Counted from the first letter of the stretch, positions 5,464 through 23,998 are shown. The stretch: 64,000 nt of DNA from IMGVR_UViG_3300017971_000001:181277-245276, one strand, 5' to 3'. Notes: generated by a model not told the origin, from the sequence alone. A program made the numbers and translations.

Positions 5464-6537
5464 ATGACCTACCGAATCAATGCCCGCGGTGACCGCGGGC
5501 GGCGCGAGCTCGAGCGGGCAGGCGACGTCGAGGCTCAGGCTTCCGCGCTGAACGAGCGCCGTAGGACCGGAGAGATCAGCGAGGGTGCCCTCTCTGCGCT
5601 CGTAGACCTTGGCTACGAACCTGCGTCCCTGCTCGTTGGTCGCGAAGGTGGAACGGCGCCGATCTACCGCTGGTCGAGCTTGCGCTACCCCGACCGTGAG
5701 ATCTTCGACGTCGAGCGCCGGATCCATGACTACGGGAAGAAGGTGATCGCTCACTTCGCCTTCGAGTCGATCGCAACGTTGATCGGCCTGGCGAATCAGC
5801 GCGGAATGCTGGTCCACGACAGCAACCGAGACACCGAGCTCTTCAAGTCTGGCATGCGCGCGGTCCCCTTCGGTGAGATCGGTGTCGACGAGATCGTGGT
5901 CGAATACGGACTCGCGCCGCTGGCCTATATCGACCTCTGCGCCGAGGTGCTCGAGGACCCGTCCACCATGCTTCCCAACGCAGCTGAGATTCGAGAGATC
6001 GAGACCCAACTGCGCGATATGCAGGCCCAAGAGGAAGAGGGTCGCCAGGTCGACGACGAGATCAACGAGCTCGAGGGCCGCCTCTACTACGCCCAGAACC
6101 CAGGTCAGTACGCCCGGGACATGAGGGACGCGGCTCACGTTGCCTCTGAGCACGCTCGCGACGAAGCCGAAGGGGCCGCTTTTCATTTCTCGGATCAGAG
6201 CTTGTCGCTTCCGCTGCTCTGGTACGCGCTGGCGGAGGCGTGTGCCTCGCTGATCGATATCTTCTTCGGGTTTCGAATGCTGGAAGGAGAGAGTTTCTCG
6301 TTCACCCAGTCCGGCACGACCTACCTGCCCAACGAGGACCTCAGCCCACGCAGTCTGCTCGAGGTCATGGCGAACTGCGCCTACGGCTACGGCTACACGA
6401 ACGACCCTACGAACTTTCACCGTCCGTTCGGGGTTGCGATCGGCGGTTTCGACAGCATGTCCAAGCACTTCTGGCCGAGATTCGTCTCGGACTTTTCTCC
6501 GGACATGATCGAAACCATTCTTGAGGAGGGGTTGTGA
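5464..6537 (+). CDS. Hypothetical protein with N-terminal D-x-R-R-E-L-E-R-x-G-D module and a coiled coil
   Basis: MTYRINARGDRGRRELERAGDVEA; 357 aa; GTGA overlap with the next gene. Confidence 0.75.
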   Translation: MTYRINARGDRGRRELERAGDVEAQASALNERRRTGEISEGALSALVDLGYEPASLLVGREGGTAPIYRWSSLRYPDREIFDVERRIHDYGKKVIAHFAFESIATLIGLANQRGMLVHDSNRDTELFKSGMRAVPFGEIGVDEIVVEYGLAPLAYIDLCAEVLEDPSTMLPNAAEIREIETQLRDMQAQEEEGRQVDDEINELEGRLYYAQNPGQYARDMRDAAHVASEHARDEAEGAAFHFSDQSLSLPLLWYALAEACASLIDIFFGFRMLEGESFSFTQSGTTYLPNEDLSPRSLLEVMANCAYGYGYTNDPTNFHRPFGVAIGGFDSMSKHFWPRFVSDFSPDMIETILEEGL

Positions 6538-7373
6538 GCGACCGGAGGGAGAGGCAGGCAGAGCGGGTAGGGGACGAGGTCGGTCGACTCAAGGCCCTGC
6601 ACCGCCGCGGCGTCCTGCCGTTCTGGAAGCTCGAACTCCTCGCCTGGCTCGACTATGAGCCTGCGAAGGAACTGGCAGAAGCGCCGGGCGAAGTGCGACT
6701 CCTCGACGCGGCGGACCTCGTCGCTCCGAACTGGAGGATTCGAACTCGGATCTTTTCGGCTTATCTCGCAGGCGCCCTTGGTTGGTATGGGCGGAACATT
6801 TACGAGCCGAATTTGTTCAGCGCACTCGAGAGCGGCCTGCCGCGCGAATCGTTGGAGTATCCCCTCGAAGTTCTTCGATACGTCCAAGAGCAACTCATGG
6901 CGGTGACCTGGATTCGCTCCGAAGGGGCGGGGTTCTTTCCGGACGCCGATTACCTGATTTCGGAATTCCTCCGGGTCGTCGGCGAATCACCTCTGGTCGG
7001 TGCAGGCACCCTAGGTTCTTTCTTTAGAAATGTTGCACACCTGGTCTTGCTCGCACGGTCCGGTGCCCCCGGCTCCAGTCCTACTTACCCCTACCAACCC
7101 CTCGACAACGCCGCTTACCACGTTGTCGTCGCTCTGGAACTCGAGGAGGAGGGCCTTTTCGATCTCGGTGAGAGCACGATCGAGAACTTCGAACGGACTC
7201 GGATAGAAGTCGGCAGGGAAATGCTGGGCACGAACGAAGCAACGAGCCAAATGATCGCTCAGCACGGCCTTCAGCGAGTCGTCGCTCGCCGTATTCTCGA
7301 CAGGGCCGGCAAGGAGTTCCTGCTGAGTTGGTTCTTGGTGGACCGGGATCCCTGGCTTGAGAGGACGTCCTAA
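6534..7373 (+). CDS. Hypothetical protein with related N-terminal module
   Basis: MSDRRERQAERVGDE..RRGVLPFWKLELLAWL parallels the 7373 N-terminus. Confidence 0.75.
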   Translation: MSDRRERQAERVGDEVGRLKALHRRGVLPFWKLELLAWLDYEPAKELAEAPGEVRLLDAADLVAPNWRIRTRIFSAYLAGALGWYGRNIYEPNLFSALESGLPRESLEYPLEVLRYVQEQLMAVTWIRSEGAGFFPDADYLISEFLRVVGESPLVGAGTLGSFFRNVAHLVLLARSGAPGSSPTYPYQPLDNAAYHVVVALELEEEGLFDLGESTIENFERTRIEVGREMLGTNEATSQMIAQHGLQRVVARRILDRAGKEFLLSWFLVDRDPWLERTS

Positions 7374-8164
7374 TGGCCGACGCAGAGCTCAGGCGCGCGA
7401 AGCGCGAGGGTGGCGACGAGGCGGTCGCCGAGGTCATGAAGCGCCGCATGCGCGCCGGCGAGCTCGAGCCCTGGAAGGTCAAGTTGCTCTCGTGGCTCCA
7501 CTGCCGGCCTGCCATGCTGATCTACGAGCCAGGCTCTGGCGGCAGTCTGCTGGGTGAGATCTGGCGCCTGATCGGCGCCGAGGGTATCTCTCTCGAGAAG
7601 CCCTGGCCGACGACGGTGTTCTGCGCGGGACTCCTGACGGCGTTCGAGGATCTGATCCCTCAGCCTTCCGGTGAGCCTCGGGTCCAAGAGCTCGTGGAGA
7701 TCACAGCGGACCTTCGTCGATACTGCGCTGGCCAGGCGAGCGAAGGGGAATTGGTGTCCGTGCTGCCCACGGTTGCCGGACATGCCGCCCATTTCGAGTC
7801 GCACACCATTGCGCAGAGGTACGCCAGAGCGGTTATGCATGCGCTCGTAGCTGCGCAGGCTTCCAACTTCCCAGCCAGCAGCGCTCAGGCGAGAGAGTGC
7901 CTTGGCATGCTCTCAGACGCGTGCTACTACGCCTGGGAGTACTACACCGGCGACCCGGACGACTATTCTGAGTTCGCTCCGTTCGTTGAACTGCTCGACT
8001 CGACCTGCAAGGCGCACAACCCGGTCGACTACGTGGCCGTAGGGACGAGCGTCGACGAAGGAGGGCCTGGTTACTACTTCGACATGGACGTGATCTCCGA
8101 GTGCGCCTCGATCATGCTCTCCAGGATCGCCCGCGGCTTTGTTCACGATTGGTTGTTGCGTTAG
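7373..8164 (+). CDS. Hypothetical helical protein with related N-terminal module (possibly Imm5-like body)
   Basis: MADAELRRAKREGGDEA..RRMRAGELEPWKVKLLSWL; TAATG overlap. Confidence 0.72.
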   Translation: MADAELRRAKREGGDEAVAEVMKRRMRAGELEPWKVKLLSWLHCRPAMLIYEPGSGGSLLGEIWRLIGAEGISLEKPWPTTVFCAGLLTAFEDLIPQPSGEPRVQELVEITADLRRYCAGQASEGELVSVLPTVAGHAAHFESHTIAQRYARAVMHALVAAQASNFPASSAQARECLGMLSDACYYAWEYYTGDPDDYSEFAPFVELLDSTCKAHNPVDYVAVGTSVDEGGPGYYFDMDVISECASIMLSRIARGFVHDWLLR

Positions 8165-23219: not shown

Positions 23220-23221
23220 AG

Positions 23222-23998
23222 CTAGACCTCAGGTTCGATCGTAGGCCAGACCTCGGACAACAAGCAGCGCGCGAGGTGACCGTCCGCCCAGGCGAGTTCT
23301 TCGTTGTAGGTGCCCCAGGCAGCCCGACGCGTTTCTTCGTTGACGTTGTTCTGATTGGCGCCGTGGCCCGGCCCTCCGTATTCAAGGTTCTCTTCGTCGA
23401 AGAAGCGCTGCCGGTAACAGCCCGCCATTTTCAGCGGCACGGCCTTGAGGTGTTCGTGAGGCTGGCGCCGGCAGCCGATCGAAACGTAGTAAGCGAGCTC
23501 GATCGCTTGGCTGTAGGCTGAGAGGTAAATCCGCGTCACCCTTCGATACTCTGCGCTCTCGCGGAGCTCCTCTCCCGCGACGTCGGGCGGAGTCAGGGTG
23601 GAGCCGTTGACCCATGCCCTTGCAGCTTCGATTGCTCTGTAGGCGAGCTCGGGCAGCCCTGCGATATGAAGGGAATCGCTTTCGACAGCGAACTCGTTGA
23701 TCGAGCGCGTCGCACAATCGGCTGCGAAGAGGACGGCTTCCCGCTGACCGATCGCGGCCTTGTTGAGGATCTCGACGGCGAACGATCCGTCTGAGAACAC
23801 AGGCTCCGGGGTCATGTCGGGCGGGGGAGGGAGAACCTGCTGGGCAATCGGGTCACCGAGATAGCTCGCTAGGGAGACGTTTTCAGGTGCCAGCTGACCA
23901 GCGCGAATGCGCGCGATCAGATTGGCGACTGGGTCGCCCCCGCGGCGAGATCGCCGAATGCCTTCGTCCGCGTTTCTTCGGTAGAGCTTCCGGCGCAC
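23222..23998 (-). CDS. Module protein with Imm5-like helical domain
   Basis: RRNADEG..IARIRAGQLAPENVSLASYLGDP; VLFAADCA..AIEAARAWVNG. Confidence 0.72.
   Translation of the reverse strand: MRRKLYRRNADEGIRRSRRGGDPVANLIARIRAGQLAPENVSLASYLGDPIAQQVLPPPPDMTPEPVFSDGSFAVEILNKAAIGQREAVLFAADCATRSINEFAVESDSLHIAGLPELAYRAIEAARAWVNGSTLTPPDVAGEELRESAEYRRVTRIYLSAYSQAIELAYYVSIGCRRQPHEHLKAVPLKMAGCYRQRFFDEENLEYGGPGHGANQNNVNEETRRAAWGTYNEELAWADGHLARCLLSEVWPTIEPEV

Follow-up and report, generated by a model that had tools for sequence, protein, structure and literature searches.

An array of small cassette proteins sharing a predicted helical-hairpin head in an uncultured phage

Polyvalent phage proteins are the closest known concept for the locus described here, an 18.5-kb array (positions 5464-23998) in which an uncultured phage encodes small cassette proteins; it lies in a 64,000-nucleotide stretch of DNA (IMGVR_UViG_3300017971_000001:181277-245276; from here on, the window), and in it one short module stands ahead of mostly unrelated domains. 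According to their description (Iyer, Burroughs, Anand, de Souza and Aravind, 2017; PMC5512222), polyvalent proteins join 2-15 unrelated domains, are found in phages and conjugative elements and have been proposed to take an early part in the conflict with the host. Like them, the proteins of the array are phage-encoded multi-domain polypeptides of variable order, with several unrelated domains in one polypeptide (up to 6-7 cassettes). This multi-domain design is shared, but the domain repertoire is not: the zincin-like peptidase (MPTase), ART, methylase-helicase and ParB-like domains characteristic of them were absent when 82 proteins of the present family were searched with Pfam. Here the same hairpin and an [RK]xNP junction precede the units, for which no iterated head or junction motif of this kind came up when the paper was searched by terms, and the units are encoded by separate genes just as often. 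The proteins are of a known kind, that of the modular multi-domain accessory proteins of phages, and are built on an apparently new domain family.

Other described systems resemble single aspects of the array. A short N-terminal element common to otherwise different proteins is also known from the capsid-targeting sequence of phage T4 (internal proteins and Alt) and from the ejection paralogues of giant phages (PMC9026906, PMC7411985); the T4 element, however, is some 10 residues long, is cleaved off at L/I-x-E and is found a single time in each protein, whereas a 40-residue hairpin, also found internally, is used here, and the leaders M-x(1-4)-R-R-N that precede it carry no Glu-type site. With Sel1-like and TPR repeats the module has in common two antiparallel helices (as modelled by AlphaFold), small residues, a G-D-x-x-A turn and the possibility of a tandem arrangement (in gene g15027), a likeness of shape that is not proof of homology. 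Unlike those repeats, it mostly occurs once, ahead of a domain that is not a repeat, has invariant R, D and N residues of its own and a basic arm, and Sel1/TPR profiles gave no match in proteins with 6-7 modules, nor at E ≤ 0.1 in the window proteins. Finally, an Asn-Pro pair at a functional boundary is known from the autocleavage of FlhB/YscU at NPTH (PMC3189125), although here N-P precedes D, G or P instead of T-H, there is no homology, and cleavage is a hypothesis.

The module and its copies in the window

The module is present in 15 copies in 12 open reading frames (ORFs) between 5464 and 23998, of which g12363, g15027 and g21669 carry two each; a preliminary description, made from the sequence alone, had pointed to about 12 such genes, and all 12 ORFs exist, with the module placed as it had been stated. 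A profile hidden Markov model (HMM) built from the 15 instances gives 24-58 bits to its members and at most 5.4 bits to any other six-frame segment of the 64 kb, which is a circular test, the model being scored on its own members. When one gene at a time was left out, eight instances were kept at 15-40 bits (g16901 and g17377, 40; g15027, 34 and 20; the internal copy of g12363, 22; g10806, 20; g5464, 19; g23222, 15) and the remainder at 5-9 bits; residue shuffles usually reach 6-12 bits, and once 19, so that the low leave-one-out scores fall within the shuffle range. A more independent measure comes from an external profile of 250 modules from other metagenomic proteins, from which payload relatives of the window proteins were excluded: it gives 18-48 bits to 13 of the 15 instances and at most 7.2 bits to the rest of the window, i.e., a gap of 11 bits or more between members and background, although these 250 modules, while belonging to other genomes, were retrieved with the window-derived profile and are thus not ascertainment-free. 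The same profile reveals an additional half-repeat in g15027. The two instances that fail it, g6534 with 4.2 bits and the N-terminal one of g21669 with no match, are marginal members, tied to the family only by the extension RAG-x-L…L-G-x-P-A and by weak paralogy to g7373 and g23222.

The instances, together with the junctions and units referred to below, are the following (bits are those of the external profile unless stated otherwise):

5464..5613, +: module of g5464 (ORF 5464-6537), with the leader M-T-Y-R-I-N-A, the hairpin and the extension RTG-x-I…L-G-x-x-P-A; 27.7 bits, leave-one-out 18.9
6534..6662, +: degenerate module of g6534 (ORF 6534-7373), extension type, whose GTG start overlaps the g5464 stop (GTGA); 4.2 bits, paralogy to g7373 (BLASTP 2e-5), extension motif
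7373..7501, +: module of g7373 (ORF 7373-8164), extension type; 19.1 bits
11550..11696, -: module of g10806 (ORF 10806-11696), leader M-S-Y-R-H-N-P and hairpin; 35.2 bits, leave-one-out 20.3
12238..12366, -: module of g11917, whose gene truly spans 11917-12366 and has a TTG start overlapping the g12363 stop; 25.7 bits, public gene call of 149 residues, junction sequence
13890..14039, -: N-terminal module of g12363 (ORF 12363-14051), leader Y-R-R-N-A; 23.9 bits
12909..13058, -: internal copy in g12363, preceded by a poly-Arg linker with R-R-N-P and opening the second cassette; 36.7 bits, leave-one-out 22.1
14754..14885, -: diverged module of g14358 (ORF 14358-14885); 18.0 bits, leave-one-out 6.6
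16704..16904, -: N-terminal copy in g15027 (the gene truly begins with the ATG at 16904) with a tandem partial second hairpin; 37.4 and 12.2 bits, AlphaFold
16263..16274, -: Q-N-N-P junction of g15027 without a hairpin, where the homologue P0120 begins as M-R-H-N-P
15477..15917, -: hairpin-less cassette of g15027 (the part earlier called ART-like), starting with the N-P of R-K-N-P (15912-15923) and followed by the R-E-N-P junction; absent as a block from P0120, model confidence 25-35
15339..15488, -: internal module of g15027, after R-E-N-P, opening the last cassette; 41.2 bits, model helices 483-494 and 497-509
17252..17380, -: module of g16901 (the gene truly begins with the ATG at 17380, in an ATGA overlap); 46.7 bits
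17740..17868, -: module of g17377 (ORF 17377-17868), whose payload is a helical region and a beta domain with CPRGH…CxxC; 47.8 bits, AlphaFold, homologues with R-R-N-A/S leaders
23094..23219, -: degenerate N-terminal module of g21669 (ORF 21669-23219), extension type; no external match, 24 bits in the circular HMM only, extension and paralogy to g23222
22428..22577, -: internal copy in g21669, preceded by R-S-N-P and of the extension type; 18.6 bits
23846..23998, -: module of g23222 (ORF 23222-23998), leader Y-R-R-N-A, hairpin and extension; 19.7 bits, payload family common to P0018, P0084 and P0111

Two details of the preliminary description are borne out by these instances. RxNP or RxNA does stand directly upstream of the module in g5464, g10806, both copies of g12363, the internal copies of g15027 and g21669, and g23222, and the extension L.R.RAG.L…LG.P.A is real and also present in other genomes.

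Across 320 copies the consensus reads R-x-R-R-N-(x)-P-D-E-R-L-R-x-L-E-R-A-A-A-x-G-D-P-E-A-x3-L-x5-R-A-G, with 0-3 residues between R-R-N-P and D-E-R-L-R and a total length of about 40 residues; one Asp (99%), three Arg (93-98%), the Asn (95%) and two Gly (91%) are near-invariant. The module is predicted to be a helix-turn-helix hairpin. In the AlphaFold model of g17377, helices 2-14 and 18-30 flank the G-D-P turn, with a predicted local distance difference test (pLDDT) score of 85-88, and in that of g15027 residues 4-55 form four helices, i.e., two consecutive hairpins (pLDDT 69-87). No relevant match was obtained in Pfam-A (all 12 window proteins) or in NCBIfam, PHROGs and PADLOC (10-11 proteins), and a profile search of the PDB with the module matched only de novo designed, idealised helical proteins. 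On this sequence evidence the module appears to be a new, so far undescribed domain family, outside the curated families and without a solved relative.

Identical residues are mostly encoded by different codons across the copies, the junctions have no conservation at the DNA level beyond codon bias (third positions are not conserved), and a 3.8-kb contig with a guanine-cytosine (GC) content of only 44.8% (Ga0137458_1001911, or L014) carries two good modules, of 48 and 35 bits. Taken together, this indicates that selection acts on the peptide, and a DNA-level repeat or recombination site at the module or the junction was dropped as an idea in view of the differing codons and the unconserved third positions. 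The exception is the pair g16901/g17377: their first 60 nt (20 codons) agree to 95%, and the 3 changes there are synonymous, with no non-synonymous one. The same findings bear on chance similarity between helices rich in E, R, L and A in a GC-rich genome, the possibility by which the preliminary description itself would have been undone. In its favour, g6534, the N-terminus of g21669 and g14358 are weak in the leave-one-out test; against it stand the member-background gap of the external profile, E-values down to 1e-38 among 1.84 billion proteins, the occurrence of the motif in the 45% GC contig, the varied codons behind identical residues and a fixed position, at an ORF start or after NP. As a general explanation chance has next to no probability, and it is already refuted for 13 of the 15 instances.

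Some gene starts differ from those in the list of ORFs. The true starts of g15027, g16901 and g11917 are internal ATG or TTG codons overlapping the upstream TGA, which places M-S-D (M-L-S-D in g11917) at the N-terminus. A 9-mer, NTGAGCGAY, in which an ATG, TTG or GTG start overlaps the upstream TGA stop and is followed by Ser-Asp, recurs at five junctions (17377-17380, 16901-16904, 17865-17868, 12363-12366 and 6534-6537), and these overlaps with their Ser-Asp indicate that the module genes are translationally coupled. The gene calls in ENA start g17377 and g16901 at an internal GTG and thereby lose the first 12 residues of the module (17833-17868 and 17345-17380, both -), whereas the longer reading is supported by the purely synonymous differences between the initial 20 codons of the pair, by the ATGA overlaps and by full-length homologues. 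Automatic annotation thus hides part of the module motif.

Cassettes, payloads and distribution

A cassette consists of a conserved head (a basic arm R-R-N, then P, A or S, then the two-helix hairpin) and a variable soluble payload. Fewer than 40 residues follow the last module in only 3 of 154 proteins, and the median payload has 161 residues. In this phage most cassettes are separate coupled genes, with 2-4 cassettes in each of g12363, g15027 and g21669, while relatives have in-frame chains of up to seven cassettes, the best profile matches having 6-7 copies each. Internal copies are preceded by a P/G/R-rich stretch that ends in [RK]-x-N-P, while N-terminal ones have either an M-S-D… start or a short leader, M-x(1-4)-R-R-N-[P/A/S]. 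The two Arg of R-R-N are found in 76-77% of the N-terminal copies versus 54% and 35% of the internal ones; the Pro after the Asn shows the opposite trend, with 46% at the N-termini (where the Asn itself is absent in 37% of the copies) versus 88% of the internal copies with a locatable Asn, or 81% of all internal copies. This difference suggests that R-R-N is a part of the module and that the Pro is specific to the junction. Besides, [RK]xNP is 4.6-fold enriched in the payload regions (52 observed versus 11.2 ± 3.2 in shuffles), where it partly precedes units without a hairpin.

How the units are exchanged can be seen in P0120, which starts as M-R-H-N-P exactly at the internal Q-N-N-P of g15027 and lacks, as one block, the 147-residue unit that g15027 has between R-K-N-P and R-E-N-P. 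One cassette is here inserted or deleted exactly at NP junctions, and gene arrays and chains are shown to interconvert in evolution.

The payloads themselves are highly diverse. Only three related pairs are found within the window, and 359 payload segments from the family form 248 BLAST clusters, of which 189 have a single member. A payload that is shared may stand at differing positions and beside differing neighbours, alone and in chains; the CPRGH…CxxC domain of g17377, for instance, is the last of the six units of P0006. The central proposal of the preliminary description, a conserved N-terminal module on mostly unrelated and shuffled payloads, is thereby supported. Its labels for individual payloads fared worse. 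For “ART-like” and “Imm5-like” no support was found in Pfam, NCBIfam, PHROGs or PADLOC; the former cassette, searched alone, had no homologue, and its pLDDT of 25-35 in the g15027 model (44.5 overall) is too poor for the ART idea. The “Zn ribbon” of g17377 is backed by the conserved metal-site pattern CPRGH…CxxC and by no library match, and when the g17377 model was compared with PDB and BFVD by Foldseek, no match fell below E = 0.18. Across the family, at least two CxxC are present in 35 of the 359 payload segments versus 3.2 expected. Pfam searches of the 82 relatives yielded 11 scattered payload matches (among them GNAT ×2, L5_gp82 ×2, DUF5591 ×2, DUF6884, DUF5754 and HTH_31), and neither these nor the library scans of the window proteins, PADLOC included, detected toxin, immunity or defence families in payloads or neighbours. 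A strongly hydrophobic 19-residue stretch is present in only 7 of 154 proteins, so that secretion signals and membrane segments must be rare and the proteins soluble.

Among 1.84 billion protein representatives, the profile search retrieved 584 carriers at E ≤ 1e-3 (the best 150 of which are listed) and 35 at E ≤ 1e-10. Ten top matches that were looked up all come from metagenome assemblies (Logan or JGI), and the carrier contigs examined look phage-like (up to 245-275 kb, others 66-98 kb). At least five further copies lie in the same genome 41-61 kb upstream of the window, and other loci have 4-11 copies within 4-23 kb; a scan of JGI metagenomes gave only 6 loci, mostly on contigs already known. 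No relative was found by tblastn in 50,697 GenBank phage records, and two pattern scans of 185,579 cellular species genomes returned 444 and 41 pattern matches with no confirmed relative. The preliminary description had mentioned similar paralogues in Planctomycetota and Myxococcota as a hint at the host, presumably meaning the “repeat-companion” N-terminal domain TIGR02996 of Gemmata and Myxococcus paralogues. TIGR02996 is a segment of about 40 residues with N-P-D and G-D-P that is common to the N-termini of many paralogues; its motif spacing differs from that of the module, which had no NCBIfam match at E ≤ 1 (assuming that the model is included in release 20.0), and with no module relative in the cellular genomes scanned the hint found no support.

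All this amounts to an undescribed module and, in large uncultured phages, to a grammar of domains made up of a basic arm, the hairpin, a variable payload and an Asn-Pro junction, which organises hundreds of orphan domains in what seems to be a clade of them. A single profile is enough to flag the accessory repertoire, the domain boundaries and gene fusion or fission in progress, and in this way offers an entry to phage dark matter.

Possible roles of the head

The reading that we tentatively rank first, at somewhat less than an even chance, is that the head is a shared protein-protein docking handle for shuffled accessory payloads. Through it, many different payloads would be recruited to a single common partner of phage or host origin. 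The Asn-Pro junction may delimit domains or start a helix between units, with processing as a possible further role; the payloads would most likely be host-takeover or accessory factors and not toxins. The near-invariant polar positions (Asp, Arg, Asn) speak for a specific interaction surface instead of a generic helix, and it is these invariant charged residues, together with the conserved arm at free N-termini and the fact that each unit keeps its own copy, that put the docking handle ahead. Nonetheless, several points weigh against it. The common partner is putative; module identity is barely higher within proteins (0.456) than between them (0.429), so that there is no clear co-evolution with a genome-specific partner (a genome-specific flavour of the modules, taken as a sign of it, was dropped on these figures); the hairpin could instead pack on its own payload; and a packaging tag on a processed polyprotein would equally show one handle per cassette.

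The main rival, although unlikely, is precisely such a tag for virion packaging and ejection, in which the hairpin would target the cassettes to the prohead core or scaffold, much as the T4 sequence does for internal proteins and Alt, chains would come apart at R-x-N|P through a protease of the phage or Asn-mediated self-cleavage, and the tagged cargo would be injected with the DNA. Large phage genomes with many small paralogues that have one N-terminal element in common, a P/G/R-rich, linker-like stretch with a fixed dipeptide at every chain junction, and the short M-x-x-R-R-N leaders at gene starts are all in line with this, and there are precedents both for N|P self-cleavage, in the NPTH motif of FlhB/YscU (PMC3189125, PMC4620466), and for giant phages that package many ejection proteins processed by the prohead protease (PMC7411985, PMC10052503). 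However, a cleavage requirement does not predict that the Pro is weak and the Asn often absent at the N-termini; N-P lacks the T-H of NPTH here, none of the nearby genes was recognised as a protease, and the leader is too short for targeting, so that the cargo would have to keep its tag, which in T4 it does not. Regulators and a kinase-like gene make up the neighbourhood, and head genes are not recognisable beside the cassette arrays; this argument is weak, since the structural genes of this phage are not recognisable at all, which in turn takes something away from the case for the docking handle. A wider use of the junction, with [RK]-x-N-P as a true separator that releases many small proteins per ORF (by self-cleavage, a dedicated protease or the ribosome) and leaves the hairpin as an address tag, is an improbable idea; it would mean a polyprotein strategy in tailed phages, with the hairpin as a universal tag for packaging or for docking to a host machine. 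More generally, should the hairpin be an address tag, it would provide a natural portable means to load cargo onto a phage or host machine, and should the junction be a processing site, it would open a new route of phage protein expression.

Slightly less likely than packaging is a purely structural role without any common partner, in which the module, as a Sel1/TPR-like subdomain, would cap small, fast-evolving domains and keep them stable or soluble, with N-P-D-E as a strong helix start insulating neighbouring ones. The pattern A-A-x-x-G-D-x-x-A-x-x-x-L…G resembles what we take to be typical of Sel1-type hairpins, the tandem hairpins of g15027 are repeat-like, the lack of a genome-specific flavour fits, and so do the matches of the PDB search to idealised designed proteins; yet near-invariant, surface-type Arg and Asp over hundreds of diverse contexts and a basic arm at free N-termini exceed what a fold needs, and the Sel1/TPR models of Pfam match none of the proteins, even those with most copies. 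The five or six conserved Arg in the arm and both helices, loosely reminiscent of the N-terminal arginine-rich motifs of lambdoid N proteins, and the over-representation of zinc-ribbon-like payloads noted above could also be read as a nucleic-acid-binding hairpin that brings the payloads to a specific RNA or DNA element; this is quite improbable, considering that equally conserved Asp and Glu leave the module nearly neutral; nor did a repeated DNA or RNA element come to light, although no search aimed at one was made. As for secreted effectors of the polymorphic-toxin kind, with an N-terminal trafficking domain, C-terminal toxins and immunity genes, the analogy drawn in the preliminary description holds for the architecture, a constant N-terminus with variable C-termini, and fails for the rest. 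No toxin or immunity domain was detected in the window proteins or the 82 relatives and no known trafficking domain either, candidate signal peptides and membrane segments are rare, the carriers are in phage contigs and were not found in cellular genomes, and the module recurs inside chains, all of which makes this explanation very improbable.

Source genome and neighbouring genes

The window is the final 64 kb of the 245,276-bp IMG/VR contig UViG_3300017971_000001 (alias Ga0180438_10000045), and the same genes are present in an ENA assembly (k141_260100) of 245,035 bp, which has its breakpoint elsewhere and runs 113 kb past the right edge of the window. The two assemblies are thus circularly permuted, which suggests a complete phage genome of about 245 kb. 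According to its listing (PMC8036902), the sample is a metagenome from the sediment of a hypersaline lake. A salt-in halophile host was considered and dropped, as the isoelectric points of the proteins are mixed and Asp amounts to 5.4%. The GC content of the window is 60-68%. Its genes are tightly packed, many starts overlapping the preceding stop; those between 26.5 and 8.9 kb are read from the minus strand and those at 5.4-8.2 kb from the plus strand. Among about 50 window ORFs scanned, the only family matches were an RNase T-like exonuclease, a LAGLIDADG-Mom fusion and the helix-turn-helix (HTH) of g18756. The features upstream of the array and two conserved neighbours of the cassette genes are:

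734-1585, +: RNase T-like exonuclease ORF, upstream of the array
4338-4412, +: tRNA-Leu, anticodon AAG, upstream of the array
17865..18746, -: g17865, 293 residues, protein-kinase-like motifs (from sequence); BLASTP 8e-45 to L004 and 3e-41 to L013
18756..19955, -: g18756, 399 residues, multi-HTH regulator-like; Pfam Sigma70_r4_2 and HTH_17, PHROGs transcription regulators, homologues in L004 and L013

The motifs of g17865 (a Gly-rich loop followed by V-L-K, then G-D-x-H-x-x-N and T-D-x-G-D) are kept in its homologues in L004 and L013, and the protein had no sequence match in Pfam, PHROG or PDB. As to g18756, it has three or more HTH motifs and ends, like both of its homologues, in a short N-P…W-rich tail. 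In L004 and L013, two other phage contigs, the homologues of both genes are interleaved with cassette genes. Elsewhere, carriers are found in arrays of small dark ORFs with HTH regulators, Cpn10, glycosyl- and methyltransferases and an integrase. Next to g18756, the 188-residue ORF 19957-20523 (-) has a lipoprotein signal (lipobox L-S-G-C) and H-E-x-x-H and no family match, and may encode an exported zinc peptidase-like lipoprotein.

Farther to the right, the ORF 47571-49205 (+) joins a LAGLIDADG homing-endonuclease domain (8e-19) and a Mom-family domain (4e-8), and could be a homing endonuclease or an intein inserted into a DNA-modification gene. In the right-hand plus-strand operon, the ORFs 46812-47492, 49384-50826 and 57933-60509 (+) have homologues with 26-48% identity in UViG_3300019458_000005, an 82-kb contig that is also rich in modules, and these shared homologues point to a common core and a phage clade.

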